Shown here in pieces: positions 1,896 through 62,112 of a stretch of DNA of 64,000 bases (positions are counted from its first letter, which is position 1; each line of letters starts with the position of its first letter). Both the position numbers and the translations under genes were made by a program. The stretch lies in sequence record MN871445.1. One strand, given 5' to 3'. Below the pieces are notes generated by a model. That model was not told the origin of the DNA and did not search any database. It saw nothing but the letters and a program-made list of their open reading frames with translations.

Positions 1896-3323
1896 ATGGT
1901 AATGAAATTGAAAGGTCGCCGTATTAGCCTGGAAGAGCTGGCTGAAGGCAACGTAGACGCAGGCGCCGCGGATGCAGTTGCAGCAGGCGACATCGAAACC
2001 CGTCTGGAAGTGGAAACCCGTCCGGATGTAGACCTGGTTATTGCTGAAGGCGATATCGACGACGCAGCTACTGATGTTGAAGTAGCTGAAGATAACGTCG
2101 ATACTCTCGTTGACACCGGTGAAGAGCTGGCGGTCATCCGCAACCAAATCGCCGATACCCTGGAAGATGAAGGTCTGGACGAAGTTAGTGCCGGCCTGGC
2201 GCGCACTGCCGCCAACATCGCACTGCGTCGCGTTGACAGCGAGCTGGTAACTCCGGCCACTGAAAGCTTCGGCGGTTCTGCCACCGCACGTATGGACAAT
2301 ACCCGCGTAACGATGGAAGCCATCGACGGCAAACTGCGCCAAATCTGGGAAGCAGTTAAGAAAGCAATGATCGAAGCCTGGAACGCATTCAAGGCCCTGG
2401 TCAAACAACTGTTTGACGGTAAAGCCCGCGTAAAAGCACAAGCTGAGAAACTGCTGGAAACCATCAAAGCGACTGCCGGCAATGCCGCTGGCGGTGAGAA
2501 GATCGAAATCAAAGACGCGACCCTGAAAATGATCGCGGTTCAGCGCCCGCTGGCGGCTGATTGGGAAACTCCGGTTCAAGCTATTCTGGCTGGCGTGGCC
2601 GCTGCTGATAAACTGGCTGAGCAGGAAATCGCGTTTAATAACGGTCTGGCGTCTGCGCTGCAGGGTGTTAACCCGGAAGCGGGTCTGGACGAAGCAACTC
2701 GTAAAGTGCTGGGCTTCCTGTCCAGTTACAAACAAGCGGCTGAAGCCGCAGCGACCGCATTCAAAACCATCGGCGGCGAAGCGAAAGCAGACATCGACGT
2801 ACCGGACGGTTTTGAAGTAGTCGTATCCAACGTTCTGCCGGGTGGCTACGCATTTTACATCGTTGCACCGAAAGAAGGTTCTGATCTGTCTCTGCCGGTT
2901 ATCCTGGCCAATACCAAATCCGGTATTACCGAAGTCGAAGTTACTGGCGAATTCTCCGGTGACGTAACTGCGGTATCTGCTGCATCTGCCGTTTCCCTGC
3001 TGGAATCTGTCATTGCCGCAGTTGATGCGCTGGCTTCCGATAAACTCGAAGAGCTGGTTGCTGCACAGGACAAAGTCATCAAAGCCGGTGATGCGCTCGC
3101 CAATAAAGGTGGCGAAGCTGGCCCGCTGGGTGCCCTGCTGCGTTCCCTGCCGCGCGTTGTTCGCGGCGTTGCCAAAGGTTCGGCTGACTGTGAAAAATAC
3201 GCAGTTAAACTGTCCTTCGCGGTAGTCGAAGTTGTTCGTGCTTCTGCACGTACTTACGGCAAAACCGGTACTGATGTTGCAGAAGGTAGCGACGCCGCTA
3301 AAGGCGCTGCTGCTGAAGCCTAA
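1896..3323 (+). CDS. Inner head (ejection) protein, phiKZ gp93-family paralog 1
   Basis: Acidic propeptide with S/A-x-E protease sites (ISLE, ATE, TME at E141), then the amphipathic motif AIDGKLRQIWEAVKKAMIEAWNAFKALVKQLFD typical of phiKZ internal head proteins; strong high-expression codon bias. Confidence 0.85.
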   Translation: MVMKLKGRRISLEELAEGNVDAGAADAVAAGDIETRLEVETRPDVDLVIAEGDIDDAATDVEVAEDNVDTLVDTGEELAVIRNQIADTLEDEGLDEVSAGLARTAANIALRRVDSELVTPATESFGGSATARMDNTRVTMEAIDGKLRQIWEAVKKAMIEAWNAFKALVKQLFDGKARVKAQAEKLLETIKATAGNAAGGEKIEIKDATLKMIAVQRPLAADWETPVQAILAGVAAADKLAEQEIAFNNGLASALQGVNPEAGLDEATRKVLGFLSSYKQAAEAAATAFKTIGGEAKADIDVPDGFEVVVSNVLPGGYAFYIVAPKEGSDLSLPVILANTKSGITEVEVTGEFSGDVTAVSAASAVSLLESVIAAVDALASDKLEELVAAQDKVIKAGDALANKGGEAGPLGALLRSLPRVVRGVAKGSADCEKYAVKLSFAVVEVVRASARTYGKTGTDVAEGSDAAKGAAAEA

Positions 3324-3333
3324 AGCATTGAAT

Positions 3334-3377
3334 TAACACTGCTAAGGGCGGGGGGTGACCTCCGCCCTTTTGTGTTA
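3334..3377 (+). terminator. Intrinsic terminator, two-tier hairpin
   Basis: AAGGGCGGGGG-GTGA-CCTCCGCCCTT (3344-3369) then TT; outer helix TAACAC/GTGTTA. Confidence 0.85.
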
Positions 3378-3395
3378 TCGATAGAGGAATAAATA

Positions 3396-5567
3396 ATGAC
3401 TGCATCAAAATTATTGCGAATCCCTACTCACGTTAAGCGCACTAACGTCTCTCTCGAAGAACGTGAAGCTGTTGCTGAGCGCGATCCGGATATTGTCGAC
3501 ATGTCTCAAACTCCTGATGACGTTAATCCTGATGATGCGGGCCAAGCTGCAACTGCTTCTTCAGAGGCGACATCTCAGGACGGTGACGTGGCAGGCTCTG
3601 CTGATGTCGCCGAGACAAGCACTGACGCGGGTGTTGCGTCTACAGAAGCTACCGGCGACGTTGCCACTGGGGCAGAACCAGATGCCGCTGCATCTGCAGA
3701 TGACACTACGGCGAGTGCCGACGAAACCCAAACCGATGAATCCGGTACCGCTGGCGGTGACGAAGCCACCTCTGCAGCGGCTGATGTCGGTGCAACTACC
3801 GATACCGAAGCCACGCCCCCGGCCGACGATAGCGTCGTAGATAGTGGTAGCGATGCTGCTAACGCCGATCTTGACGTGCAAGCTGATATCACACCGCCTG
3901 AAGAAGCACAGACCACCGAAGCAGATACCGGTTCAGATACTGCAACCGATGCCGGTGACCTGGGTGGCGATGCAGGTATTGGGGAAGATACTGGTTCTTC
4001 CGTAGAACCAGCTGCTGAGTCCACCAACACTGATGTTGAAACCACTACGGATACAACAGATGTTGATACCACCGCATCAACAGATGAAGCTGAACCAGTT
4101 GAAAATCCGGCAGCCGACATTCCGGAAGAAGCTCTTACTTCGGCCTGGGTTCAGGGCGTAGCCGTGGATAACCACGATGACGTCACCGACCTCAAAGATG
4201 GCGAAGAAGAACTGGATGTCTATCAGCACAATGAAAATGAACTTCATGATGCTGCGACCAGTCTGGAAGAGTTACGCAACTGTTGTGTCCCAGTTGCCGT
4301 TGTTACTCACACTGAAACTGATGACCTGAGCACGCCGGTGCAAACCGAAATGGTTGCTGATATCAGTGATAAAGCTGTTGACTTACTGACGGCCAGTAGC
4401 AACCAAGTACTTTCACGCCTGGGAAGTCAATTGGACCTGCCGGCAACTACTGAATCTGCAGGTACTTCGGTTGAGCGTCTTCAGGTCACCATGGAAGCCA
4501 TCGATGGTAAGCTCAAACAGATTTGGGAAGCCATCAAGAAAATGGCTGTCGCTGCCTGGGAAGCATTTGTTAATTTTGTCAAGGGCATCTTTGACAAAGC
4601 ACAACGTATTCGCAACCAGGTGAGTGGCCTGCGTAAATTCGTTGCGCAATACAAAGGCGCTACGCCAGAAGCTACTGAATTTGAAAACAACGCCGTCTGG
4701 GCCGCATGTAGTCTGGAAGTAGGTACCCAGAAATTCGAATTCGACGCAAATAAAATCTCGCCGACATTTGAAACCTACTTGAGTGCGGCGAAACCATATC
4801 TGCTGAATGCAAGCCGTGCCCTTGCGCCGGGTCTTAACATGGTCTTCGATCGGGTTGCCGCAATCGACCCGGAAAACGAGGAAACTAAGAAAGCAATGTG
4901 GGACGCATTTGGTAATCTGATGAATCGGTATACTAAATCCGTCATTATGGTTACCAAAATGGTTGGTGGCGAAACCAAACTGGGTGACCATGAATTAGAA
5001 GGTGGTTCCCTTACTGATGGGTTGCAGCCGATTTATTCTGCCCCTGGTCTGGGTGGTGGTTTCTTGTATGTCGATGTAATGGACCCGAAAGTCAGCGTAG
5101 ATGTCGCTGCGGTTGCATTCTGGAATCGTGCAGGTGCGCGGTATGTTCGGAATCATCCGGTTGTTCCAGAAGGTGCAACAGTTCAGACTCTTTCCGTTGA
5201 ACAAATGGAAACCATGCTGGATCAGATCGACGAAGCCATGGAAACTGTGTTAGAATATCGTTCAACCTTTACGGTGTTCGAACAGCAATTAGCAAAAGGT
5301 CAGCAGGCTACCTCCAAGTTGGCAAATAAACTGGAAAATAGTAGTGAGGCCAATATTGCTATTTTCGCATCGATGAAGTTGGTGCCTAAACTGACTGGAT
5401 TCAACCAAGCCGTAATCAATGGTTTGTATTTCCAATCCAGTGCGATGCTTCAATACATCGTAGCGTCTACCAAGCAATATTCAGCCAATGAAAGCGCTGT
5501 AGATTCAACAGCGCAGGGTGTGGCCGACAAGGGTGCAGGTAAACTGCCAGCACCTGAGGCAGCATAA
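3396..5567 (+). CDS. Inner head protein, phiKZ gp93-family paralog 2, with very long acidic propeptide
   Basis: About 250 aa D/E/A/T-rich region, then ATES...VTMEAIDGKLKQIWEAIKKMAVAAWEAFVNFVKGIFD, nearly the same motif as in 1896..3323. Confidence 0.85.
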   Translation: MTASKLLRIPTHVKRTNVSLEEREAVAERDPDIVDMSQTPDDVNPDDAGQAATASSEATSQDGDVAGSADVAETSTDAGVASTEATGDVATGAEPDAAASADDTTASADETQTDESGTAGGDEATSAAADVGATTDTEATPPADDSVVDSGSDAANADLDVQADITPPEEAQTTEADTGSDTATDAGDLGGDAGIGEDTGSSVEPAAESTNTDVETTTDTTDVDTTASTDEAEPVENPAADIPEEALTSAWVQGVAVDNHDDVTDLKDGEEELDVYQHNENELHDAATSLEELRNCCVPVAVVTHTETDDLSTPVQTEMVADISDKAVDLLTASSNQVLSRLGSQLDLPATTESAGTSVERLQVTMEAIDGKLKQIWEAIKKMAVAAWEAFVNFVKGIFDKAQRIRNQVSGLRKFVAQYKGATPEATEFENNAVWAACSLEVGTQKFEFDANKISPTFETYLSAAKPYLLNASRALAPGLNMVFDRVAAIDPENEETKKAMWDAFGNLMNRYTKSVIMVTKMVGGETKLGDHELEGGSLTDGLQPIYSAPGLGGGFLYVDVMDPKVSVDVAAVAFWNRAGARYVRNHPVVPEGATVQTLSVEQMETMLDQIDEAMETVLEYRSTFTVFEQQLAKGQQATSKLANKLENSSEANIAIFASMKLVPKLTGFNQAVINGLYFQSSAMLQYIVASTKQYSANESAVDSTAQGVADKGAGKLPAPEAA

Positions 5568-6954: not shown

Positions 6955-6990
6955 ACTCAATGAGGGAGGCTAATGGCCTCCCTTTTATGC
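6949..6990 (+). terminator. Intrinsic terminator, two-tier hairpin
   Basis: AGGGAGGC-TAATG-GCCTCCCT then TTTATGC, pairing with GCATAAA at 6949. Confidence 0.85.
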
Positions 6991-6996
6991 TGAATA

Positions 6997-7255
6997 TAAA
7001 AAAATACTATTTAGGATTACAATTTGAGTACACTTGGGGATGAAACATAAAAGACCTAAGGAAACGTTCCGTGCGAAGCACTCCACGTTACTATCACTAA
7101 TTAAAAAAGATAAAATAAATATACTTAGTAAGAAAGAAAAAAGATCTTAGATTTGGGGGTTTGGGGGAGGGGTAGGAGGAGCGAAGCTCCTCCGTAGGGG
7201 AGGGCCATAAAACATGATCGTGTGGGGAAGGGAAGTAAACCCTTCCCAAATATGC
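6997..7255. other. Structured non-coding element A (GNA mini-hairpins, A-tract, G-tracts)
   Basis: No credible ORF. Two GCGAAGC mini-hairpins (7071-7081, 7175-7193), A-rich tract 7100-7142, five G-runs 7155-7204, hairpin 7225-7247 followed by AAATATGC; layout shared with 48573-48737. Confidence 0.7.
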
Positions 7256-7312
7256 TGATTAATCGTTATTCAGAATTATCGTGTGTTTAACTCTACTAAG
7301 AGGTTTACTATT

Positions 7313-7750
7313 ATGAAACATTCTATTGTCCCTACACAAGCACCTAAATTCAGTATGATGGTAGGTTCCAGATCGTTGGAGACGGGTGTCAAGCTCACCT
7401 TAGAAGGCAATGGTCGCATTGATTTCTCACCGGTAATGTCCCAGGTGGTTGCGCCGAACAATGCACTGCAATCGACGGCATATTGGTCAGAGCGCGAACC
7501 ATCAACCTACTTTCTTAGTCTAGGCCAATATTCGTGTACGCCGTGTGGAATCATCAAATTCCATGAGGGGGATGTTGAAGAACCTAATGGAACGACGGTG
7601 GAGTCTTTGCTTCATGTCGTTGAACATCGACTCGAGTACCATCAATCCGGCGAATATCCCTGTAAGGAAAATGCAGCGGCATTGAGTGCCGTACGGGCCG
7701 CTTTGGTCGCGTTACATCATCGTAGCGAAAAACAAGGAAAAGTATCATGA
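7313..7750 (+). CDS. tad1: Tad1-like (Thoeris anti-defence 1 family) immune-signal sponge, divergent
   Basis: IKFHEG...NGTTVESLLHVVEHRLEYHQSGEYPCKENAAALSAVRAALVALHHR aligns with the recalled cbTad1 core IKFQKG...[46 protein letters not shown]. ATG at 7313 after AAGAGG. Confidence 0.75.
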   Translation: MKHSIVPTQAPKFSMMVGSRSLETGVKLTLEGNGRIDFSPVMSQVVAPNNALQSTAYWSEREPSTYFLSLGQYSCTPCGIIKFHEGDVEEPNGTTVESLLHVVEHRLEYHQSGEYPCKENAAALSAVRAALVALHHRSEKQGKVS

Positions 7751-8610
7751 TTCAAGTTGTATCTGCCTTTCCTGGCTGTGGGAAGAGTTGGTTTCATCGA
7801 CAGTTTACTGATGTTCTGGATAGCGATTCCAGTGCTTTTGATAAATCGGCATTCCCACAAAACTATATCTGCCATATCCGCAATACGATGGTACGAGATA
7901 AATGTATCTTTGTTAGCAGCCACGGTATGGTCAGGACTGCCATGATTGATTCTGGAATAGAATATATCCTGGTTTACCCCAGCCACGATATCAAAGAGGA
8001 GTTCCTCGAACGGTATCGCAAGCGCGGCAGTGAACCTCAATTTATTGAATTGTTGGATAAGAACTGGGATGGCTGGATTGGGGAATGTCAGGGGCAGCAA
8101 GGCTGCGTGCACGTGGTATTGCAATCAGGCCAATATCTCGCGGACGTCATTGAGTACGACCCACTTTATCGTCGCTTCACAATTAAAGAAGATGCGACTA
8201 CGTTTACCCCACAGCCGCACAAACATAAAACGGAATACATTGCCGTAGACTTCGATGGGACAATTGTAACCAATGATTGGCCTGAGGTTGGTAAAGATAC
8301 GGGTGCAATTGCGGTGCTGAGGGATTTACTTAGCGCGGGCTGTAAGTTAATCTTACATACGGTCAGAGAAGGAAAAGAGCTTAATGAAGCATTAGCTTAT
8401 TGCGCCAAACATGGAATCGATTTTATCGGAGTTAATGAGAATCGTGAGTTTCCTCCCGGCGGCGTCATCAGAGATAAACCTTATGCGGACGTATATATCG
8501 ATGACCGGGCGATGGGGTGTCCGCTTACTCACAATCCACTCACGCATAAAGAACCTTATGTAGATTGGTTTGCGATTAGAAAACAACTGGAGAAACGAGG
8601 AGTACTATAA
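7747..8610 (+). CDS. P-loop kinase / HAD-family phosphatase fusion protein
   Basis: N-terminal Walker A (SAFPGCGKS); C-terminal HAD motifs AVDFDGT, LHTVR, KPYADVYIDDR; ATGA overlap with the upstream gene. Confidence 0.8.
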   Translation: MIQVVSAFPGCGKSWFHRQFTDVLDSDSSAFDKSAFPQNYICHIRNTMVRDKCIFVSSHGMVRTAMIDSGIEYILVYPSHDIKEEFLERYRKRGSEPQFIELLDKNWDGWIGECQGQQGCVHVVLQSGQYLADVIEYDPLYRRFTIKEDATTFTPQPHKHKTEYIAVDFDGTIVTNDWPEVGKDTGAIAVLRDLLSAGCKLILHTVREGKELNEALAYCAKHGIDFIGVNENREFPPGGVIRDKPYADVYIDDRAMGCPLTHNPLTHKEPYVDWFAIRKQLEKRGVL

Positions 8611-10154
8611 TGCCGAGTATCGGACTTAACCTCCCTGAGGGGTATGAGTTAATCTCACGCCCTGTTGCTCAGGGTATTGCTCAGCGGGTGATATCACATC
8701 TGGGAATTCAAGATAAAGTCAGTATCCTGTTTCCTGGTGATGCTGAGGTAGCGGCTCAGGCCGGCAGTACATTGGGGGAACAGAAGGAAGGGGGTCCGAA
8801 TACACGCTTTGCCAGTACTCAAAGACTTCAAGTCAGCATGAATGAACAGGTTCTGGAGGGGGAGGTTTTAGCAACCCCAACTTGGCAAGTTAACCAACCC
8901 CCCATTTTCTCCGACCCTAAACTAGGCATCGCCATGAAACCTATCTACCATTTGGTGGAAGGGGTATTGTCTTTTACTTATCGTGCCGCTGACCAGACCA
9001 GTGCAGAACAATGGAAAAATAGACTGTTACGATATATTTCCCAAAACCGCGCTGAAATGTACCATGAAATTATTTATGCGTATACCATCCCAGGCCAGTT
9101 CATTACCATCTTGGCTGAAATTCACAAGTTGCGAGAACAAATCGCACCGTATGGCGATACCGTCATTGAATATCTGCGCAACCATTTCAGTGATAGAGTA
9201 GATGTTAAAACTAACATGGCTGGTAAGGGTGCTGCGTTTGCCGTGGATGAAATTCAGAAAGGTGTCATCGGTTGGTTTGATTGGACTATCCCACCAACCC
9301 CAGAAAAAACCAGTGAAGAAAGCACGTATACCGCTACCTTTGAGTTCCATTATCAATATCAGCAGGTTACTGGGGTACATCTGAAATATCCTATTATCGT
9401 ACACCAACAGCTTTTGCCCAGTAATTTACGTCCGTTGAATTTATCCTACGAACTTAATCGCAGCTTACCGACGTATATGTCTTTAGCTAAGCAGGAATAT
9501 CAGGCGGTTAAAAAGGAAACAGACGGCTATTATGCAACGCAGGAAGGTATCCGTTATCCTGATTTTGATGAATGGGCGCCAAATCACGTGATAGCCGATC
9601 AGATTCCATTACTGACCGTAATGTTGACTATTTCTGCGGATGACCCTCGATTTCTTTTGAACATCCAAGAACTATCCCATTGGAATTTTAATCCAGATAT
9701 TCTCGAGTTTCTGCTGGCTGAACCTAAATGGGCAACATTAACCAAATTTACCCCAGTCTTAATCACGCTGTATTGTGATGGCGACAAATGCGATGACCAG
9801 ATCGTACAGTTGGATGCTTCCGGCGATGTACGTACAACCATCGATTTGGACTTAAGGCGCCAATACCACATCGTCATTAGTGCGATGTCTGATTTATCAC
9901 AGTTGAATAAAAATAACACCGATCTTTTGCGACAATACCCTAAAGCCGCCATGGTTGTGCTGTATGCCTTAGAACCTCGTTTAGAATCTTGGGGTAAATT
10001 ACCAGAAGTATTGGGTGATAAGCTTGTATCTCGCGTGGGTTGGTTGGAAGCAATCAACGTCATTAAAACAACTTCCCCTATTTTCCGTACAGCAAAATAC
10101 TACTCACGTTTTACGGTGGGGTCTTACATCCTGGCTACAGCGGAGAAAAAATAA
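8610..10154 (+). CDS. Probable virion structural protein (phiKZ-like tail/baseplate block)
   Basis: 514 aa, TAATG-coupled to the upstream gene; position between inner-head genes and the hub-like gene. Confidence 0.55.
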   Translation: MPSIGLNLPEGYELISRPVAQGIAQRVISHLGIQDKVSILFPGDAEVAAQAGSTLGEQKEGGPNTRFASTQRLQVSMNEQVLEGEVLATPTWQVNQPPIFSDPKLGIAMKPIYHLVEGVLSFTYRAADQTSAEQWKNRLLRYISQNRAEMYHEIIYAYTIPGQFITILAEIHKLREQIAPYGDTVIEYLRNHFSDRVDVKTNMAGKGAAFAVDEIQKGVIGWFDWTIPPTPEKTSEESTYTATFEFHYQYQQVTGVHLKYPIIVHQQLLPSNLRPLNLSYELNRSLPTYMSLAKQEYQAVKKETDGYYATQEGIRYPDFDEWAPNHVIADQIPLLTVMLTISADDPRFLLNIQELSHWNFNPDILEFLLAEPKWATLTKFTPVLITLYCDGDKCDDQIVQLDASGDVRTTIDLDLRRQYHIVISAMSDLSQLNKNNTDLLRQYPKAAMVVLYALEPRLESWGKLPEVLGDKLVSRVGWLEAINVIKTTSPIFRTAKYYSRFTVGSYILATAEKK

Positions 10155-11546
10155 ATGGCCATCATTAACCCGAACGCAGATAACCCGGCGAGCGTCACAG
10201 TCAACCCCAACATCAAACCCAACGAATATCGTGGTGTGGTTGAATCTAACCGATATACCCCCGCACGTTCTTTGCTGACCCACATCAGCGGCTATCCCAT
10301 GGAAGTGGAGTATTATAGCCAATATTTGAACGTAGACAACGCGGTATCCGGCCAGCAAATTAATCGCATTTCTCCGGTACAACAATATCTGCGCATCAGA
10401 AAAATGGAGTTGATGGTATCAACCCCCATTAATCAGTCGCAGGACCAGACCTCCAGAGAAATGTCTGCGGTAGGTAATGCTACCACATATCCAGGCATCA
10501 TCCCTAATGACGGGGATATGTTTATTGCAGATGGCTTGGACGGTAATCGCTACCTGTATCAGATCCGAAATGTAGAACAGAAAACGATTTTAAAAGACAC
10601 CTGTTATACTTTTGAGTTCTTCATGATTGAAATATTGTCGACTCAACGTAACAGCGATCTTTTAACTAAAACCGTTAAAGACACTACGTTTGTCCGCGAT
10701 TTCGTTTATACCAATCAACGACCTTTATTGGTCGATGAAGAATATACCTTCGTATTAAAGGGACGTCAATTCATCAAAGATAGTCAGGATAGGTATCTAA
10801 AAGACTACCTCAATAAACGGTACCTTACGTTTATCATACCGGGACAAGAGTTGACTTCATACGACCCCTATTTGAGTAAAGCGGTTTATGCATTGCTTGA
10901 TGGTCGAGAACACTCAAGGAAAGCAGATATTCGCCTGCAGAACTGTGAGGGGGGATATGCTTACCCGATTGAAACTGTTTGGGATGGTATTTTAAATTGC
11001 AACGGTGATAGTCGGGATACTTGGGCAACCAAGATGGGCATGATTTACAGTAGCGACCTGGCCAACCAGCCGATGTACGGCAGCATTAAATATTCCGGTA
11101 TCTTCCAGTTCTATTCGCCATACGGACATCCAGATACAATTGCCACATTACCCGATGATTTTTATTTGCTGTATTACGGGATGGGTGAAATTACTGAAAC
11201 CACATTGCGGCCGCCCTATCGCCCTCTGTCCATTTCTGCTTTTGCTCCCGCTACGGATTTGGGTAATGTAGACCAAGTTGGCAATAACGTGGCCACTACA
11301 GCACCGACGTTGGTACGTCCTACGGGAAGCGATGATTATTATGTTTTCAGTGAAAACTTTTATCTCAAAACAACCAATCAAACGGTGCTTGAATCTCAGG
11401 TAAATGCGCTGTTGGATGGGATTACTTTAAACCGACCGCATCTGTTGCAGCTAATCAACGATTCCTATCGTTGGGGGCATTTAGATAGATTCTACTATCT
11501 TCCGGTATTATGGGTACTGATACGCAAAGCACTATTAGAGGTGTAA
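10155..11546 (+). CDS. Probable virion structural protein
   Basis: 463 aa, abuts the previous gene; N-terminal beta-rich segment (PNDGDMFIAD) resembles head-tail joining/baseplate folds. Confidence 0.55.
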   Translation: MAIINPNADNPASVTVNPNIKPNEYRGVVESNRYTPARSLLTHISGYPMEVEYYSQYLNVDNAVSGQQINRISPVQQYLRIRKMELMVSTPINQSQDQTSREMSAVGNATTYPGIIPNDGDMFIADGLDGNRYLYQIRNVEQKTILKDTCYTFEFFMIEILSTQRNSDLLTKTVKDTTFVRDFVYTNQRPLLVDEEYTFVLKGRQFIKDSQDRYLKDYLNKRYLTFIIPGQELTSYDPYLSKAVYALLDGREHSRKADIRLQNCEGGYAYPIETVWDGILNCNGDSRDTWATKMGMIYSSDLANQPMYGSIKYSGIFQFYSPYGHPDTIATLPDDFYLLYYGMGEITETTLRPPYRPLSISAFAPATDLGNVDQVGNNVATTAPTLVRPTGSDDYYVFSENFYLKTTNQTVLESQVNALLDGITLNRPHLLQLINDSYRWGHLDRFYYLPVLWVLIRKALLEV

Positions 11547-11547
11547 C

Positions 11548-12246
11548 ATGGCACGCATCACCGCTGAGGATTTGGTTAAGCCAATTCCAAAACACAAAGT
11601 AAAAGAATTCCTTAAAAAACAAATTGACGATATGTCACCAGTTGACCGTATCTTTCAATTAAAATTTAAGGTAAGTATTCCGGCAGCTTATCTCTATAAC
11701 GATGAAGATTTTGCGCGGGGCGTTCACGTCACTGGTGACCGAGAAAGGGATGCTCGTGCTGCCCAGGAAATTGAAACGTTATTCATGCCCATAGTGGCCA
11801 ACGATAAACCTCGACCACTGCCTTGCATTTTGTTATACCACAAACAAAACGTACCTGGTTTTAATTTGGTACATGCTGAGGATGTTCCCCGTGTTTATCA
11901 GATTATCGTTGATTATCTGGAGTTCCAATCCAGAAATTTGAATGAGAATTTAAATCTTCCGGAAGCAAAAAGGATTGAGCTATATAACGACCTGGAAGAT
12001 TTGAATAAACTCGCAGCATTTATTCATCCGAACGCCCACGCCACCGCTGTACCGAAACACCTCAATCCGGACAGCATTATTTCCAGGTTGCGCCTGAGAC
12101 CAAAAGTGGGTATCGGTGCAACCCAACGTGGCTACAGCAATGTCCCTACCTCATCGGAACCGCAGCCAATCCCGGAATATAAGGGACTAGACACCATGCT
12201 GGGTAGTCAGATACTGGAAAAATCAAAACGTTGGAAACAGGAGTAA
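11548..12246 (+). CDS. Hypothetical protein
   Basis: 232 aa, GAGGTG SD, operonic. Confidence 0.6.
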   Translation: MARITAEDLVKPIPKHKVKEFLKKQIDDMSPVDRIFQLKFKVSIPAAYLYNDEDFARGVHVTGDRERDARAAQEIETLFMPIVANDKPRPLPCILLYHKQNVPGFNLVHAEDVPRVYQIIVDYLEFQSRNLNENLNLPEAKRIELYNDLEDLNKLAAFIHPNAHATAVPKHLNPDSIISRLRLRPKVGIGATQRGYSNVPTSSEPQPIPEYKGLDTMLGSQILEKSKRWKQE

Positions 12247-12252
12247 TCCGCC

Positions 12253-13617
12253 ATGGCCTACACCGATACCGCGCTACAGGCCGATATAAAACGCGTTATT
12301 CATAGTAACAGCCAAGTGTACTCGACTTACACGATTGAGATACACTGTGGCACGTCTACAACGGTGATTACGCCATTAAAATTGTTGTCGATAGATACTT
12401 TGCACGACTATGAAAAAGGTTTTGCAGAGGAAAAACAGATTGAAGTCATTTTGGTTGAAAATGATTATCAGTCTTATATTTTCCCAAACAGGGATAATTT
12501 AAAGATAACCATTATTAGGTCTCCAATTGGTGTTGTTAGCGATAGCAAAAACTATAATGGCGTAAATACGGCTAAGACCTATAGGGCCACGTTAGTGGAC
12601 CCCTCACCGGCAAGGACCAACGAAGGTAAGGGGTTTGCTTCGGCTCAGGGGGATTATTCTAGCCAGATGATGATTTCAGTCAAATTTCAGTTGATTGATT
12701 TGGCCGTGGAACAGATGATGTTAACGAGCACTGGAGGTATCTTTAGAAACTCCACTCCAGGAAATACTCTGAAAGCCCTATTAACAACACTGTCACAAGG
12801 ACTGAAATTAGATGATGCGGATGCCGTGAAAGGAGTGAACATGGTTGACGCAGACAACATCAAACAAAGGACGCATCTGTTGGTTGACCAGGGGACCAAA
12901 CTGTATGATTTGGCCGATCATATCCATCAGAACTGCGGGGGGATTTATAACACTGGGGTAAGTTGTTATTACCATGCCAATTACTGGCATGTATTCCCGC
13001 CGTATGATGTCACCAGAATCAGTAAATCAACCAAAACCATGACCCTTATGTTGGTGCGTACGCCGGAGTTACCCGATTCAGATAGCACGTATTTACAGGA
13101 CGGAAATACCCTTTATGTAGTATCAAACGGTACTACGTTGCATATTGACCAGGTCGACCATCAAGCCGTGAATGCAGGTAATGGTGTCAGATATGCAAGG
13201 GCGACTGATTTGTTTGATAATTTTATTGATACCACCAAACAAGCAATGGCCACATCAACGGCAAATGTAATGAATGCGTTTATTACAAATAAACGAGATA
13301 GTGGTCTGAGTAACGCCCCGTTTTCCAAAAATAGAGTCACTGATAACGATTGTTTGGAATTATCAAAATTATCCCAAAGGCAAGGACAGCAAATCCAAGT
13401 CCAATGGGATAAGGCAGATCCGTCGTTGATTATTCCAGGCATGCCCGTTAAAGTGCTTTATGAATCGGAACGATTAGTTTATCAATTAGTAGGTACCATC
13501 CTCAACGTACAAAGTCAAGTACGTATGAATCAACCGGGTATGACGACCACCCGGTACGTCACTGGGGTTAGCATGACTTTATTCGTCACGGTAGACAAAA
13601 CCAGTACTGCCGCATAA
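12253..13617 (+). CDS. Probable baseplate hub-like virion protein
   Basis: 454 aa, beta-rich, C-terminal QVQWDKADPSLIIPGMPVKV resembles the end of T4 gp27-like hubs; assignment is inference. Confidence 0.5.
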   Translation: MAYTDTALQADIKRVIHSNSQVYSTYTIEIHCGTSTTVITPLKLLSIDTLHDYEKGFAEEKQIEVILVENDYQSYIFPNRDNLKITIIRSPIGVVSDSKNYNGVNTAKTYRATLVDPSPARTNEGKGFASAQGDYSSQMMISVKFQLIDLAVEQMMLTSTGGIFRNSTPGNTLKALLTTLSQGLKLDDADAVKGVNMVDADNIKQRTHLLVDQGTKLYDLADHIHQNCGGIYNTGVSCYYHANYWHVFPPYDVTRISKSTKTMTLMLVRTPELPDSDSTYLQDGNTLYVVSNGTTLHIDQVDHQAVNAGNGVRYARATDLFDNFIDTTKQAMATSTANVMNAFITNKRDSGLSNAPFSKNRVTDNDCLELSKLSQRQGQQIQVQWDKADPSLIIPGMPVKVLYESERLVYQLVGTILNVQSQVRMNQPGMTTTRYVTGVSMTLFVTVDKTSTAA

Positions 13618-13646
13618 TCGGGAGGGCGAAAGCCCTCCCTTTATGT
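13612..13646 (+). terminator. Intrinsic terminator, two-tier hairpin
   Basis: GGGAGGGC-GAAA-GCCCTCCC then TTTATGT; outer helix GCATAA/TTATGT. Confidence 0.9.
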
Positions 13647-13668
13647 CATTTTTATAAAACCATCAAAT

Positions 13669-13692
13669 AAAATAATTATAAACCTATATAAC
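13669..13692 (+). promoter_or_regulatory. Early (virion RNAP) promoter candidate
   Basis: AAAATAATTATAAACCTATATAAC aligns with 23994-24017 and 63349-63371; phiKZ early promoters carry an AT-rich tract plus TATTAC. A second TATATTAC lies at 13763-13770. Confidence 0.7.
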
Positions 13693-13700
13693 TTGGGTGA

Positions 13701-15008: not shown

Positions 15009-15062
15009 TTGGGTCCTTGGACCCAACTACCTATACCTTTATTTTTATTTTGAGGTGGTATT

Positions 15063-18899: not shown

Positions 18900-18935
18900 G
18901 GGAGAGGCTTCGGCCTCTCCCCCCATTACTTTTTT
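18900..18935 (+). terminator. Intrinsic terminator
   Basis: GGGAGAGGC-TTCG-GCCTCTCCC, with T-tract at 18930-18935. Confidence 0.8.
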
Positions 18936-18961
18936 ATTTTTTGTTTTAATGGAGGTTTATT

Positions 18962-19468
18962 ATGGTTGAAGTAAAGTTGCAAGTAACCTACGAATCAGAA
19001 TTACTCCCACCAGTTTATGTTACCGACCATCTGTATTTAGGTGAATCTGGTGCATGCATCATTTACATGCTAGGCACTGAAATTAACGGGATGTTTATTC
19101 GATACGCTACCGCAGATGCTCCTCAAACACTCGAGAACATTATTAAACTGGGTGCGGCTACCAATTCCCTGGTTAAAGCTTATGCCGGTAATACGGCGCA
19201 GCCTGTGATTGTTATTACAGGCACTTTAACCGCTGATGTTTTTGCATCGAAAGAAATGAAATTGACATCAGTGGCGCTGCGCATGGGTGCAATCATATTT
19301 GCCAAAGCAGACTACCTCGGCACTTATCCGCCAAGCAAAACCGCAACACCATCCCAACAGTACCTTTGCTTTGACGCCAGTATGTCTAGCGATTACGTTA
19401 CTGCCGCGGTGGAGCAGGTAGTCGCAGTTAATCTTAAGAAAGCCATTATTGCTAAGTTCTATAGTTAA
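18962..19468 (+). CDS. Hypothetical protein
   Basis: GGAGG SD, 168 aa. Confidence 0.7.
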   Translation: MVEVKLQVTYESELLPPVYVTDHLYLGESGACIIYMLGTEINGMFIRYATADAPQTLENIIKLGAATNSLVKAYAGNTAQPVIVITGTLTADVFASKEMKLTSVALRMGAIIFAKADYLGTYPPSKTATPSQQYLCFDASMSSDYVTAAVEQVVAVNLKKAIIAKFYS

Positions 19469-19507
19469 CGGCATAAAAGGGAGGGCGAAAGCCCTCCCAA
19501 TATGTTG
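19465..19507. terminator. Bidirectional terminator; exact inverted copy of 56016-56058
   Basis: GGCATAAAA-GGGAGGGC-GAAA-GCCCTCCC-AATATGTT between convergent genes. Confidence 0.9.
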
Positions 19508-21731: not shown

Positions 21732-23927
21732 ATGTCCCGACTCTCGAATAACACCGACTTCACCGCCAACTCTGACTTGGTCAAAGCAATCGGCGGTACC
21801 CTGTCTACTCAGGGAGCCCAGCTGGTTCCGAATCAACTGACCCAAGCGGTCATTTCTATGGAAGGTTTTGCGGACGAATCCGTGCGTAACAACGTACAGA
21901 TGTCGGCGGCTAACCTGCGTAACACCATCAAACAGTGTTTTGATACTGTTGGTAAAACTCGCGGCCTGAACTACAAACTGAGCGAACAGCAGCTGGAAGC
22001 GGCAGCCATCGTTGCGGCAGCACGCCCACGCGCTAAAGACTTTGCTCTGGCGTCCCGTTCTGGTCAGATTTCTCTCGAAGGCATCGATCTGCCAGCATCC
22101 GGTACCGCGTTCGGTTCCCTGAACTTCCGCGCGCCGAGCGAAGCCCTGGTCTCCATGGAAGCGTTCGACAACTCCGAACTGCAGAAAGGCATCGACGTTT
22201 CCGTCGTCTTCAACGCCCTGGCCGTTGGCCAGTCTCCGTTCAACGAAGAATGGTTCCCGCCGGTTGTGGGTACTCCGGATGAAATCGTATTCCGCATCAA
22301 TGTGCCGCGTATCCTGGTACAGAACGAATACATTCCGCCGAACCTGTCCGGTGACCCGGCCGACTTCAAAAAGAAAAACCTGATCCGCGCAGCGCTGGAT
22401 TACACGATCCTGATGAACAACTCTACTGAGATTGTTCCGATCTATCGTACCGGTGTTAACACCGACAAATTCGTTAACCTGGCACTGATCGGCGGCCAGC
22501 CGCTGAAAGCTATGGTTGGCGCTGTTGAAGTTGATACCGCCCCGCTGAAACCGGGCGTTAAAGTATCTCTGCTGAACCTGGCGTCCAACGAAGCCCTGAA
22601 ACTGGCTGGCGTTGTGAGCGAAACTGATGCTGTTGAACCAAAAGTGTCTCTGAAAAACCTGTACGTCCTGGTGACTGACAGTTCTTCGAGCGCTGGCGCT
22701 TCTTCCGTTATCAAATTCAAAGTCAAAGATTATCCGCGCGCCGGTTTCTTCAAACCGATGCAGGGTAACATCCGTGAGATGGACCTGGCCTTCCGTTCCG
22801 ACGTGCTGACCATCAAACCGGATACCAAAGACATCGCAGGCGCAGCACCGACTGCCCTGGCTGCACTGATCTCCGCAGGCTACACCCTGCGTCTGGACGC
22901 GTCCCTGAACGGCGACCTGAACATGGAAACCAGCAACCTGACTACTCAGGCTGGCGCGGTAACTGCCGCCTCCATGCTGGATGAAGATGGTAAAGCACTG
23001 TCTCTGGACAGCACCGAAGCTACTGCCATCCTGGATAACCTGACCTTTGCCGTACTGGGCTTCGACCTCGACGCTCGTCGTACCAACAGCAACCTGCGTA
23101 CCAAAGGCCTGATCCTGAACCCGGATATGGAACAGCGTCCGTACTACGTTCCGCTGAACGCACCGCTGGTGTCTCAGACTCCGATCGGTCAGGAACAGCT
23201 GGGCCTCGACCTGAACGCACTGGTTCAGGGTGTGCATATCCAAATCGAAAACAACGCAGTTACCACTCTGCTGAGCTACGCTGAAAGCCTGAAAGACCGT
23301 TTCATTTCTTCCGAAGTGATCGATCTGTATCCGTCTTTCGAAGCCGTCGGCGAACTGCTGGTCGCACCGTACTTCAAAGAAATCACCATCGACATGGTGC
23401 TGGCTCTGAACTCAGTATCTTCTGCGAATCGTGTAAACGACATCCAGGGCGTACTGAACGCGGTTATCCGTCAGGAAATGGCTCACGTTCTGCGTGAAAC
23501 TGGTTATACCGTCGCACTGCGCGCAAACAACGGTGGCGCAATCGAAAACCCGCACGTTATCGCGGTAACTGACCTGCTCCTGGAACGTTATCTGATGACC
23601 AACGGTGACGACCGTTACCTGGGCACCAACGCATCCTTCAGCGTCACCGCTGTAAGCGACCTGCGTATGCGTGACACCATCTTCCTGAGCTTCGGCCGTA
23701 AAGCCACTGGCAAACACGACCCGCTGACCTTCGGTAACATGCTGTACATTCCGGAGCTGTCAGTTTCTGCACAGGTCAACCGTAACGGCGCAACCATCTC
23801 TGAACGTCAAGTTCAGCCGCGTTTCCGCCACGTAGTTAACCTGCCGATCCTGGTGAAAATCAACGTCACCCGTCTGGCAGAAGCATCTCAGGATGCAGCT
23901 ATCATTTACAACAAACCGCAGGCCTAA
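21732..23927 (+). CDS. Major capsid protein precursor (phiKZ gp120-like)
   Basis: 731 aa; protease sites ISME, ISLE, VSME (E143); extreme high-expression codon bias; helicase-hypothetical-capsid synteny. Confidence 0.92.
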   Translation: MSRLSNNTDFTANSDLVKAIGGTLSTQGAQLVPNQLTQAVISMEGFADESVRNNVQMSAANLRNTIKQCFDTVGKTRGLNYKLSEQQLEAAAIVAAARPRAKDFALASRSGQISLEGIDLPASGTAFGSLNFRAPSEALVSMEAFDNSELQKGIDVSVVFNALAVGQSPFNEEWFPPVVGTPDEIVFRINVPRILVQNEYIPPNLSGDPADFKKKNLIRAALDYTILMNNSTEIVPIYRTGVNTDKFVNLALIGGQPLKAMVGAVEVDTAPLKPGVKVSLLNLASNEALKLAGVVSETDAVEPKVSLKNLYVLVTDSSSSAGASSVIKFKVKDYPRAGFFKPMQGNIREMDLAFRSDVLTIKPDTKDIAGAAPTALAALISAGYTLRLDASLNGDLNMETSNLTTQAGAVTAASMLDEDGKALSLDSTEATAILDNLTFAVLGFDLDARRTNSNLRTKGLILNPDMEQRPYYVPLNAPLVSQTPIGQEQLGLDLNALVQGVHIQIENNAVTTLLSYAESLKDRFISSEVIDLYPSFEAVGELLVAPYFKEITIDMVLALNSVSSANRVNDIQGVLNAVIRQEMAHVLRETGYTVALRANNGGAIENPHVIAVTDLLLERYLMTNGDDRYLGTNASFSVTAVSDLRMRDTIFLSFGRKATGKHDPLTFGNMLYIPELSVSAQVNRNGATISERQVQPRFRHVVNLPILVKINVTRLAEASQDAAIIYNKPQA

Positions 23928-23941
23928 TCGCCACGGTAGTT

Positions 23942-23980
23942 GCATAGACCTAGGGAGGGCGAAAGCCCTCCCTTTTATGC
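23942..23980 (+). terminator. Intrinsic terminator, two-tier hairpin
   Basis: GCATA-GACCT-AGGGAGGGC-GAAA-GCCCTCCCT-TT-TATGC. Confidence 0.9.
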
Positions 23981-23993
23981 CGCCACTGTAATG

Positions 23994-24017
23994 AAAATCT
24001 TTATAAACCTATATTAC
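23994..24017 (+). promoter_or_regulatory. Early promoter candidate
   Basis: AAAATCTTTATAAACCTATATTAC upstream of the operon with the non-virion RNAP subunit, which must be expressed early. Confidence 0.75.
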
Positions 24018-29264: not shown

Positions 29265-29304
29265 GGCATAAAGGGAGAGGCTTCGGCCTCTCCCTGTTTA
29301 TGTT
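29265..29304. terminator. Bidirectional terminator, two-tier hairpin
   Basis: GGCATAAA-GGGAGAGGC-TTCG-GCCTCTCCC-TG-TTTATGTT between convergent genes. Confidence 0.9.
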
Positions 29305-29320
29305 GCCTTTTATTTTTTCT

Positions 29321-47460: not shown

Positions 47461-47499
47461 CAACATAACTGGAGGAGGCTTTCGCCTCCTCCTATGCTG
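47461..47499. terminator. Two-tier hairpin without a T-tract
   Basis: CAACATA-ACT-GGAGGAGGC-TTTC-GCCTCCTCC-TATGCTG. Confidence 0.75.
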
Positions 47500-51333: not shown

Positions 51334-51369
51334 AACATATCGGGAGGGCTTTCGCCCTCCCATTTTTTT
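51334..51369. terminator. Bidirectional terminator
   Basis: AACATATC-GGGAGGGC-TTTC-GCCCTCCC-ATTTTTTT. Confidence 0.9.
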
Positions 51370-56015: not shown

Positions 56016-56058
56016 CAACATATTGGGAGGGCTTTCGCCCTCCCTTTTATGCCGTTAA
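56016..56058. terminator. Bidirectional terminator; exact inverted copy of 19465-19507
   Basis: CAACATATT-GGGAGGGC-TTTC-GCCCTCCC-TTTTATGCCGTTAA. Confidence 0.9.
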
Positions 56059-61585: not shown

Positions 61586-62112
61586 TAACTGATGCACTTT
61601 CTTCCGAACACACTCGTCTAATGAGCGAGGCAATTGGCATTGCCACGCAATATTTTCATGAAGCCCTATCACAAGAGTTACTGGGTGAATACACCGCCGA
61701 CCAACAACAAAAAATTATACGTGATTGTCTTGGATTAGTCACTAATCCTACATGGTTTCAGGCGTTGAATGAAACTAACCTTAAGTCTTTATGGATGGCA
61801 ATACGTAGCAACCCACACACTGAAGCGGTAACATTATCTACGGCTCAAAGACTCAGGGTGTTTTATAACGAACAGACTTGGGGAGAAATTATATCCAGGT
61901 TAGCTTCCTCGACAAAAATCTTTACCCCAGCAAATAAAAAGTATAGTGTTTTCACCGAGGAAGAATTGGGGCGCATGGGTTGCGTCAATGCATTGGATTA
62001 TCTGGCTAATAATACCTGGGTAGTTCCACTCATGCTATTGAATCAAATCGAATACAGCGCACTGCTGTCAGATAAGACGCGGGTAATTTACAATAAATCC
62101 GTTAAGGGGTAA
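61582..62112 (+). CDS. Conserved hypothetical protein
   Basis: ATGA overlap; NNTWVVPLMLL. Confidence 0.7.
   Translation: MITDALSSEHTRLMSEAIGIATQYFHEALSQELLGEYTADQQQKIIRDCLGLVTNPTWFQALNETNLKSLWMAIRSNPHTEAVTLSTAQRLRVFYNEQTWGEIISRLASSTKIFTPANKKYSVFTEEELGRMGCVNALDYLANNTWVVPLMLLNQIEYSALLSDKTRVIYNKSVKG

Follow-up and report, generated by a model that had tools for sequence, protein, structure and literature searches.

A divergent Tad1-family gene and a kinase-phosphatase gene at the head of a putative late neck and baseplate transcription unit in the phiKZ-like phage KpHz_2

The closest described counterpart of the locus reported here is gp184 of phage phiKZ, a sponge for Thoeris/CBASS signals that is referred to as Tad1 (Thoeris anti-defence 1) and described as wedged in the capsid by its N-terminus while the C-terminal part is released and injected. 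[quoted passage not shown] For nucleus-forming jumbo phages, no anti-defence protein other than the phiKZ Tad1 has so far been described, according to a review from 2026 and a preprint on transposon sequencing. We analysed a stretch of 64,000 nucleotides (nt) of Serratia phage KpHz_2 (record MN871445; hereafter the window, whose position 1 is position 62001 of the record), in which six tightly packed plus-strand genes at 7313-13617 begin with a divergent Tad1-family gene (gene 1) and a gene for a two-domain kinase-phosphatase (gene 2), followed by neck and baseplate genes (genes 3 to 6).

The gp184 and gene 1 proteins belong to the same phage family, and their Tad1 domains share 37% identity over 46 residues (E 4e-10), with no similarity between the two found outside the helical hairpin. 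Each is encoded on the late or structural strand amid virion genes, and gp184 binds inner-body proteins while gene 1 directly follows three inner-body-type genes. The differences lie in length (230 amino acids (aa) with the Tad1 domain at 101-227 in gp184, 145 aa in the gene 1 protein), in position (gp184 follows the tail lysin genes gp181-183, whereas gene 1 precedes the collar gene) and in company, as phiKZ has no kinase-HAD neighbour where gene 1 of KpHz_2 has gene 2. A late-made, packaged and injected Tad1 has already been published for phiKZ, so the KpHz_2 locus is a variation on a known strategy; what sets it apart is that its Tad1 is short and has no lid, that a kinase-phosphatase is its constant partner and that the leader is conserved to an unusual degree.

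Two other systems invite comparison. The stand-alone proteins CbTad1 and CmTad1 (PDB 7UAV, 7UAW, 8KBB-8KBH) are of the same size class as the gene 1 protein, for which the same sheet and two helices are predicted, but gene 1 differs in lying within a structural operon instead of an early accessory region. In an anti-signalling hotspot of N4-like Pseudomonas phages, the genes counter signalling defences whose structural-protein triggers are tail fibres (bioRxiv 10.64898/2026.06.04.730250). Adjacent accessory genes are common to that hotspot and KpHz_2; however, the hotspot belongs to another phage family and holds several proven inhibitors, whereas one of the two KpHz_2 genes has a counter-defence homologue.

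The Tad1-family gene and its transcription unit

By sequence and by modelled fold, gene 1 is a real but divergent homologue of the Tad1 family. In a phmmer search of the PDB, its residues 75-140 matched phiKZ gp184 (E 7.6e-5) and Tad1 crystal chains (E 1.5e-4 to 2.7e-4). An exhaustive search of 1.8 billion representatives returned 463 relatives at E < 1e-3, nearly all of them through this same segment, which is the Acb2/Tad1 hairpin domain (Pfam PF24729, matched by 20 of the 104 aligned sequences). With the profile of 104 relatives, the whole length of Tad1 was matched at E 5e-32 and residues 101-227 of gp184 at E 1.4e-24. All 17 near-invariant positions of the family are kept in gene 1; its divergent N-terminal portion, the first ~60 residues, falls outside the profile alignment. 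The AlphaFold model, with five strands (27-31, 35-39, 54-58, 65-70, 77-83) and two helices (96-111, 118-140), fits the N-terminal antiparallel beta-sheet and two long C-terminal helices of Tad1; the top 20 Foldseek matches in the PDB were all Tad1 (E 1.5e-5 to 8.5e-4, template modelling (TM) score 0.49-0.68), and the next match had E 0.8. The 'tad1-like' label given in a first-pass annotation, which had been made from the letters of the window, was borne out by these searches. A profile scan of the KpHz_2 genome found no other Tad1 or gp184 homologue, leaving gene 1 as the sole copy.

Several observations nevertheless count against the family assignment. Gene 1 itself has no Pfam, NCBIfam or PADLOC match and falls below every Pfam threshold. 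Its close relatives carry merely a 'weak' precomputed PF24729 match, and the Tad1 link came solely from the PDB and remote searches. The model has a mean predicted local distance difference test (pLDDT) value of 59, with residues 1-52 below 50, and its input alignment consisted of Tad1 relatives, so that the fold match is biased and not fully independent.

The six genes are closely joined. Gene 1 starts at an ATG at 7313 preceded by a GAGG Shine-Dalgarno sequence at 7300. The two overlaps that the first-pass annotation had described were both found at their junctions: the TGA stop of gene 1 (7748-7750) overlaps the ATG of gene 2 at 7747 as ATGA (7747-7750), and the TAA stop of gene 2 (8608-8610) overlaps the ATG of gene 3 at 8610 as TAATG (8608-8612). 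The remaining junctions, from gene 3 to gene 6, measure 0, +1 and +6 nt. It had also been proposed that these genes are translationally coupled. The overlaps are real, but each of the six starts has its own Shine-Dalgarno sequence, so coupling is possible but not required; it would also be ordinary here, start/stop overlaps being frequent elsewhere in the genome as seen in the annotation of the related phage Eowyn. A comparison of base composition gave no foreign signature for genes 1 and 2.

The block is bordered at both ends by a unit in which a GC-rich hairpin is closely followed by TATG (Table 1). Within 0-4 nt of the hairpin, TATG was present in 68 of 190 hairpin orientations across the genome against 1.8% expected (binomial P ~1e-67), and in 19 of 38 in the window. 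Because of this genome-wide enrichment after hairpins, we regard the hairpin-TATG combination as a real recurrent element; the most over-represented 10-mers of the genome all derive from it. In contrast, bare TATG on the plus strand inside 7313-13617 occurs 25 times against 22.7 expected, which is not significant. The TATG at 7251 that the earlier annotation had noted ahead of the two genes is indeed there and is part of such a unit, sitting 3 nt past its hairpin and 59 nt 5' of the gene 1 start, where the unit is a putative late promoter of the six genes. The unit upstream of the leader is of terminator type, lies 3' of the last internal-head-protein gene and is a candidate late start site too; the unit 3 nt past the stop of gene 6 is a putative terminator and candidate start for the next unit. 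The hairpin scan found no hairpin-TATG unit inside the block (7254 to 13620), and the hairpin at 13620-13639 is the first plus-strand hairpin of the family type downstream of 7247. The proposal that no terminator occurs until 13612 thus held for the interior of the block, with the actual hairpin a few bases away from the position given.

These units are kept in relatives despite changes of sequence. In the unit upstream of the leader the stem is maintained although its sequence changes, and TATG is retained; the unit before gene 1 has another stem sequence in two relatives (L014 and L016), yet hairpin and TATG are kept. In metagenomic relatives at 79% and 69% identity in the gene 1 protein, the stems on either side of the leader have changed in sequence while pairing and TATG have been preserved. 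The unit also matches motifs published for phiKZ, in which the late promoter is TATG with the G as transcription start site and the intrinsic terminator motif is a GC hairpin followed by TTAT: the short motif is the same, as is its placement beside a GC-rich hairpin. A hairpin-TATG unit lies upstream of the collar gene in phiKZ as in KpHz_2; it is directly 5' of that gene in phiKZ, FLC9 and Moabite, and in Goslar precedes gp52, which is followed by the collar gene. Unlike the phiKZ terminator motif, the KpHz_2 copy before gene 1 has AAATATG after the stem and no T-run.

Since hairpin-TATG units stand only at the ends of the block and none between, the six genes are best read as one putative transcription unit with a late-type start, a reading that is well supported, as is the apparent placing of the Tad1-like gene under late structural-gene control. 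By analogy with phiKZ, the timing would be late. [quoted passage not shown]

Taken as a whole, the explanation towards which we lean, with restrained confidence, is a late unit at 7313-13617 in which the accessory Tad1-like and kinase-HAD genes head the neck and baseplate block. Transcription would probably start at the G of the TATG at 7251-7254 beside the conserved hairpin and end at the hairpin 13620-13639. The last four genes are the universal neck and baseplate block (phiKZ gp98-gp101), and the first two are accessory genes, present in the Eowynvirus clade only and placed between the promoter unit and the collar gene. Expressed late and beside head proteins, the gene 1 protein could act late in infection; it may also enter the head and reach the next host cell together with the DNA, as shown for gp184. 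Gene 2 is a two-domain kinase-phosphatase that would be co-expressed with gene 1.

Table 1 Genes, hairpin-TATG units and leader of the KpHz_2 locus (positions in the window)
Feature	Position	Strand	Description and matches
Hairpin-TATG unit	6963..6989	+	GC-rich hairpin 6963-6983, then TTTTATG; TATG 6986-6989
Non-coding leader	6990..7224	+	Invariant blocks, internal two-step hairpin, G-run tract, hairpin 7175-7193
Hairpin-TATG unit	7225..7254	+	GC-rich hairpin 7225-7247, then AAATATG; TATG 7251-7254
Gene 1	7313..7750	+	145 aa, divergent Tad1-family protein; PDB phmmer, family profile, Foldseek
Gene 2	7747..8610	+	287 aa, P-loop kinase-like plus BT0820-type HAD; phrog_4182, phrog_1238, PDB 2obb, NF046079
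Gene 3	8610..10154	+	514 aa, collar / tail-terminator, phiKZ gp98 homologue; PDB, phrog_3289
Gene 4	10155..11546	+	463 aa, head-to-tail adaptor, phiKZ gp99 homologue; PF24214, PF24215, PDB
Gene 5	11548..12246	+	232 aa, positional counterpart of phiKZ gp100; synteny
Gene 6	12253..13617	+	454 aa, baseplate spoke, phiKZ gp101 homologue; PDB, phrog_3245
Hairpin-TATG unit	13620..13645	+	GC-rich hairpin 13620-13639, then TTTATG; TATG 13642-13645

Region 7000-13700 of the window is 100% identical to KpHz_2 (genome 270,429 bp), and it shares 97.6% identity with Klebsiella phage vB_KvM-Eowyn (genus Eowynvirus) and 85.6% across the whole 6.7 kb with KpGz_1. KpHz_2 is placed by sequence as a phiKZ-like (Chimalliviridae-type) jumbo phage because the structural genes of the window are homologous to phiKZ virion proteins. 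Its record is flagged UNVERIFIED_ORG, is free of any annotation and bears the name of a Serratia phage, with Klebsiella pneumoniae as the listed host and sea water as the source.

Among the structural genes, gene 3 matched PDB 11lc_D (E 2.5e-62), collar gp126 of 36za (3e-60) and PHIKZ098 (1.2e-39); gene 4 matched PHIKZ099 in the PDB (E 7e-47) and contains the two Pfam head-tail joining domains; and gene 6 matched PHIKZ101 (E 1.3e-45) and the Goslar spoke gp220 (5.7e-41). Gene 5 had no match in the PDB and a weak phrog_5833 match, with nothing informative. A four-gene block of the gp98-gp101 type is conserved in phiKZ, Goslar, FLC9 and Moabite. Upstream of gene 1 lie a homologue of the vertex protein gp91 and three PF12699 internal head proteins, as in phiKZ gp91-97, which places genes 1 and 2 between the internal-head-protein cluster and the neck genes. 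The window holds two GC-rich islands (2001-4000 and 22001-24000, GC ~0.55 against 0.45 for the window), both inside long genes, one of which is a PF12699 internal head protein gene at 3396-5567.

The gene directly 5' of the collar gene differs between lineages, being an internal head protein in phiKZ and proteins of unknown function of 455, 358 and 127 aa in FLC9, Moabite and Goslar, respectively. A search with the Tad1 profile found no Tad1-like gene in this slot in any of these four phages, and a tBLASTn search of 50,697 phage records with gene 1 returned its own clade only (4 records). Genes 1 and 2 in the collar slot are thus confined to the Eowyn clade, whose members, as distant as 69% in protein identity, all share this arrangement. 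We considered a Tad1 site shared across these phages upstream of the collar gene and rejected it, as the slot varies and a Tad1-like gene occurs there in the Eowyn clade only. The idea of a variable anti-defence hotspot, which was to be checked by synteny, is supported only as far as variation goes: the slot does vary between lineages, but this clade alone carries both genes there. In Goslar, the occupant gp52 (L003 5625-6008, 127 aa) comes after the hairpin-TATG unit, shares 8 nt with the start of the collar gene and showed no likeness to Tad1 in the profile search.

Elsewhere in the window, several hairpins have TATG on both strands (19479-19498, 51342-51361, 56025-56044, 13620-13639, 29272-29295 and 47471-47492), with typically TTTTATGCCG on one side and AATATGTTG on the other. 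They have the look of bidirectional units; one such case is found between two convergent genes, at 19468 and 19510. A second recurrent motif, T-rich and of TTTTATTTTTTG type, is situated a few bases past hairpins and precedes start codons by 10-25 nt, as at 15038-15046, 18933-18941 and 29309-29317; with ~30 sites genome-wide, it may be a further promoter class.

The kinase-phosphatase encoded by gene 2

Residues 3-138 of the gene 2 protein form a P-loop kinase-like domain of phrog_4182, a family that conserves the Walker A loop, an invariant L-D-S-D-S-S and an R-x-x-x-R-G segment. Residues 160-260 form a capless BT0820-type HAD phosphatase with catalytic motifs intact (PDB 2obb, E 3.6e-13; Foldseek target TM 0.76). 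Both the Walker A sequence G-C-G-K-S and the HAD motif D-F-D-G-T (D-x-D-G-T) are present, in agreement with the 'kinase/HAD' label of the earlier annotation. The HAD domain also matched NF046079 at E 1.5e-23, but at 83.6 bits this is below the cut-off of 165 and indicates a related fused domain, not an equivalog; a further match was to phrog_1238. The corresponding gene of Eowyn (NC_070650 gp124, L001 8747-9610) is named 'phosphoheptose isomerase' in RefSeq, a name shared with PHROG 1238; because the domain is a HAD phosphatase, the name looks like a carried-forward annotation error. No paralogue of gene 2 was found in KpHz_2.

The complete kinase-HAD fusion is confined to the Eowyn clade; for the most part the domains are found separately, in hundreds of phages. 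The kinase domain alone is present in many phages, including T5-like phages, where it lies in the early accessory region and its relatives are annotated as 'nucleotide kinase' and in one case as 'putative polynucleotide kinase'. The contexts of stand-alone kinase homologues, accessory regions rich in genes of unknown function, were uninformative, and a profile of the kinase domain found no relative in the PDB. BFVD matches of gene 2 are named nucleotide kinase, 5'-nucleotidase or polynucleotide kinase. In addition, a separate fusion of a deoxynucleoside monophosphate (dNMP) kinase-like domain with the same HAD type has ThyX, NrdD and NrdG genes around it and an RNA ligase 3.7 kb away. As a further observation, the kinase domain is fused to TIR in the metagenomic protein P0008 (395 aa), and P0027 and P0028 carry it joined to a KTSC domain; this hints that the kinase family may be active in NAD-derived signalling contexts.

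A nucleotide-pool, end-healing or signal-modifying enzyme would all fit this kinase-phosphatase. The first-pass annotation had called genes 1 and 2 an anti-defence cassette. For gene 1 this agrees with its Tad1 family membership, but gene 2 has no Pfam match and no PADLOC or other defence-related match, and the analogous kinase-HAD fusion sits amid the nucleotide-metabolism genes ThyX and NrdD/NrdG; both points tell against a joint counter-defence role. Naming gene 2 a counter-defence gene is therefore not yet justified, and a role in nucleotide metabolism is at least as likely.

The strongest alternative follows from this and comes somewhat short of an even chance: there would be no functional cassette, gene 2 being an auxiliary nucleotide-metabolism enzyme (nucleotide kinase plus nucleotidase) and gene 1 alone serving counter-defence. 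It is consistent with the BT0820 or 5'-nucleotidase-like group of the HAD domain, with the names of the kinase relatives in T5-like phages, with the independent fusion amid ThyX, NrdD and NrdG, with the mostly separate occurrence of the domains, and with the empty PADLOC result. Against these stands the gene 1/gene 2 pair itself, kept with its ATGA in every relative found, down to 69% identity. A nucleotide-pool enzyme, as a rule required early or in mid-infection, would also be out of place in a late structural operon; the kinase-TIR fusion in one metagenomic protein hints at immune signalling; and the early accessory region in which the T5-like kinase lies is one of small genes of unknown function.

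A different assignment, which we consider unlikely, makes gene 2 an end-healing enzyme like T4 Pnkp (5' kinase plus 3' phosphatase) that would mend tRNA or other RNA after cleavage by anticodon nucleases of the host; the cassette would then unite a signal sponge with RNA repair. T4 Pnkp, bacterial Pnkp1 and gene 2 all have an N-terminal P-loop kinase and a C-terminal capless HAD at similar length, and the domain order and size are those of T4 polynucleotide kinase/phosphatase. Full-length Foldseek alignments reached Pnkp1 (E 1.1e-4, alignment probability 0.94) and T4 Pnkp (E 1.6e-3 and weaker), polynucleotide kinase recurs among the BFVD names and in the one T5-like homologue, and the Walker A and D-x-D-G-T motifs are intact. 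However, the TM scores of these alignments are just 0.22-0.25, there is no sequence-level match and none in Pfam to polynucleotide kinase or phosphatase families, the HAD is of BT0820 type, and the profile of the kinase family has no sequence relative in the PDB. Nor was an RNA ligase partner found in any KpHz_2 reading frame, although this was a weak test made with a single metagenomic RNA ligase as query.

The conserved leader upstream of gene 1

Between the last internal-head-protein gene and gene 1 lies a leader of 235 nt whose G-run tract is situated around 7155-7205. Its identity to the KpGz_1 sequence is ~95%, compared with 85.6% over the full 6.7 kb, which makes it more conserved than the surrounding coding DNA, and long blocks of it are invariant even in the relative whose gene 1 protein is 69% identical. 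A search of Rfam gave no family, only a match at chance level, and RNAalifold on four leaders met too little variation to test structure save in the two flanking hairpins. The leader may be a leader RNA or a binding platform.

From this conservation arises the suggestion, in our view improbable, that the two accessory genes have a timing of their own: the leader would hold an early or middle promoter or a regulatory RNA, and the neck genes would start at an internal TATG. Besides conservation exceeding that of coding DNA, the leader contains an AT-rich stretch with a TTAC-type element resembling the phiKZ middle-promoter motif, two TATGs (8482 and 8557) fall in the final 130 nt of gene 2, and short leader RNAs bounded by conditional terminators have been published for phiKZ. 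Separate starts are, however, at odds with the lack of a hairpin-TATG unit in the block and of TATG enrichment there; the overlap of genes 2 and 3 leaves a terminator no room; and the T-rich motif class of this genome (TTTTATTTTTTG type) is absent 5' of gene 1. A single late unit thus remains our preferred reading of the block.

Ligand pocket and possible packaging of the gene 1 protein

In CbTad1, the pocket for glycocyclic ADP-ribose (gcADPR) and cyclic dinucleotides has been validated by mutation (F82, N92, R109 and R113) and has a C-terminal lid at 116-122, while R90 and T97 form a cyclic-trinucleotide site at the hexamer interface. We compared these positions with gene 1 across 99 relatives. 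The near-invariant residues that gene 1 has in common with stand-alone Tad1 include the equivalents of N92 (N120) and R109 (R137), so that two of the four validated gcADPR-pocket residues are kept. The rest of that pocket is a difficulty for a conventional sponge: F82 is replaced by H110 (F in 85/99 and H in 7/99 relatives), R113 by Q141 (R in 92/99), and the lid is absent, with 8 residues after R137 against a median of 15 and 8 or fewer in 3/99. In lacking the lid and in having Q at the R113 position, gene 1 differs from gp184 as well, and together with the divergent first ~60 residues the same features separate it from stand-alone Tad1. At the trinucleotide site both exchanges, R90 to K118 and T97 to S125, are conservative and fall in columns that vary in the family. 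These features and the short C-terminus are conserved across the clade, as is the protein in its entirety, N-terminus included.

The most likely role of gene 1 would be to sequester nucleotide immune signals. We infer a shift toward cyclic trinucleotides as the more likely ligand, since the gcADPR/dinucleotide pocket is altered and the trinucleotide-site residues are conservatively replaced.

Whether the protein is also packaged was considered in the light of gp184. Packaging is plausible by that analogy, and two points favour it: gene 1 has 65 residues before the conserved Tyr against a median of 32, that is, ~30 more than a typical Tad1 and well conserved, and it is positioned right after three internal-head-protein genes. 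N-terminal extensions of at least 40 residues are found in 24 of ~147 Tad1-family representatives, about one sixth, and are therefore a recurrent class. Four other points argue the opposite way. Gene 1 is without the ~100-aa N-terminal anchor of the gp184 type. It has no conserved S-x-E protease motif, the S-L-E at 21-23 not being conserved in the 79% and 69% relatives; we presume the phiKZ head-protease site to be of the S/A/G-x-E type. No N-terminal peptide is shared with other phage proteins, and the label 'structural protein' of gene 1 in Eowyn is annotation only, maybe copied from PHIKZ184.

The position among virion genes also admits the thought that gene 1 has ceased to act as a sponge and today serves chiefly as a structural or scaffolding protein associated with the head, retaining no more than the Tad1 fold, which seems to us quite unlikely. 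Loss of the R113 equivalent and of the lid and the exchange of F82 for H would be expected of such a protein; phiKZ gp184 is itself part of the capsid vertex-binding complex, gene 1 is encoded amid head and neck genes, and the Eowyn label reads the same way. In opposition, 17/17 near-invariant positions are kept, including N120 and R137 of the pocket, and the trinucleotide-site residues are replaced conservatively. Moreover, gp184 is dispensable for phiKZ growth, its capsid part is the N-terminal region that gene 1 does not have, and the capsid map of Goslar contains no gp184 homologue. The least probable proposal, to which we give very little credence, is a two-part counter-signalling module in which both proteins would be packaged with the internal head proteins and injected with the DNA, the lid-less Tad1 variant capturing and the kinase-phosphatase chemically inactivating the host's immune nucleotide, with the leader as a dose-setting regulatory RNA; if true, it would couple a sponge to an enzyme, which is not described for Tad1.

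The locus shows that one Tad1-family gene, and no more than one, is likewise retained in a distant clade whose hosts are Klebsiella and Serratia; with the single late unit as the favoured explanation, the gene is again apparently wired to late virion-gene expression. The gain is incremental, as phiKZ already provides a published case of a sponge that is made late, packaged and injected, but the KpHz_2 clade has its own Tad1 form, which is short, has a remodelled pocket and is accompanied by a conserved enzyme partner. The hairpin-TATG rule may serve as a simple sequence marker of transcription-unit borders in unannotated phiKZ-like genomes. If gene 1 is packaged without a long anchor, this would be a second route for loading a sponge into the jumbo-phage head, and if its ligand range has shifted, it would help to map the pocket features that set Tad1 specificity.

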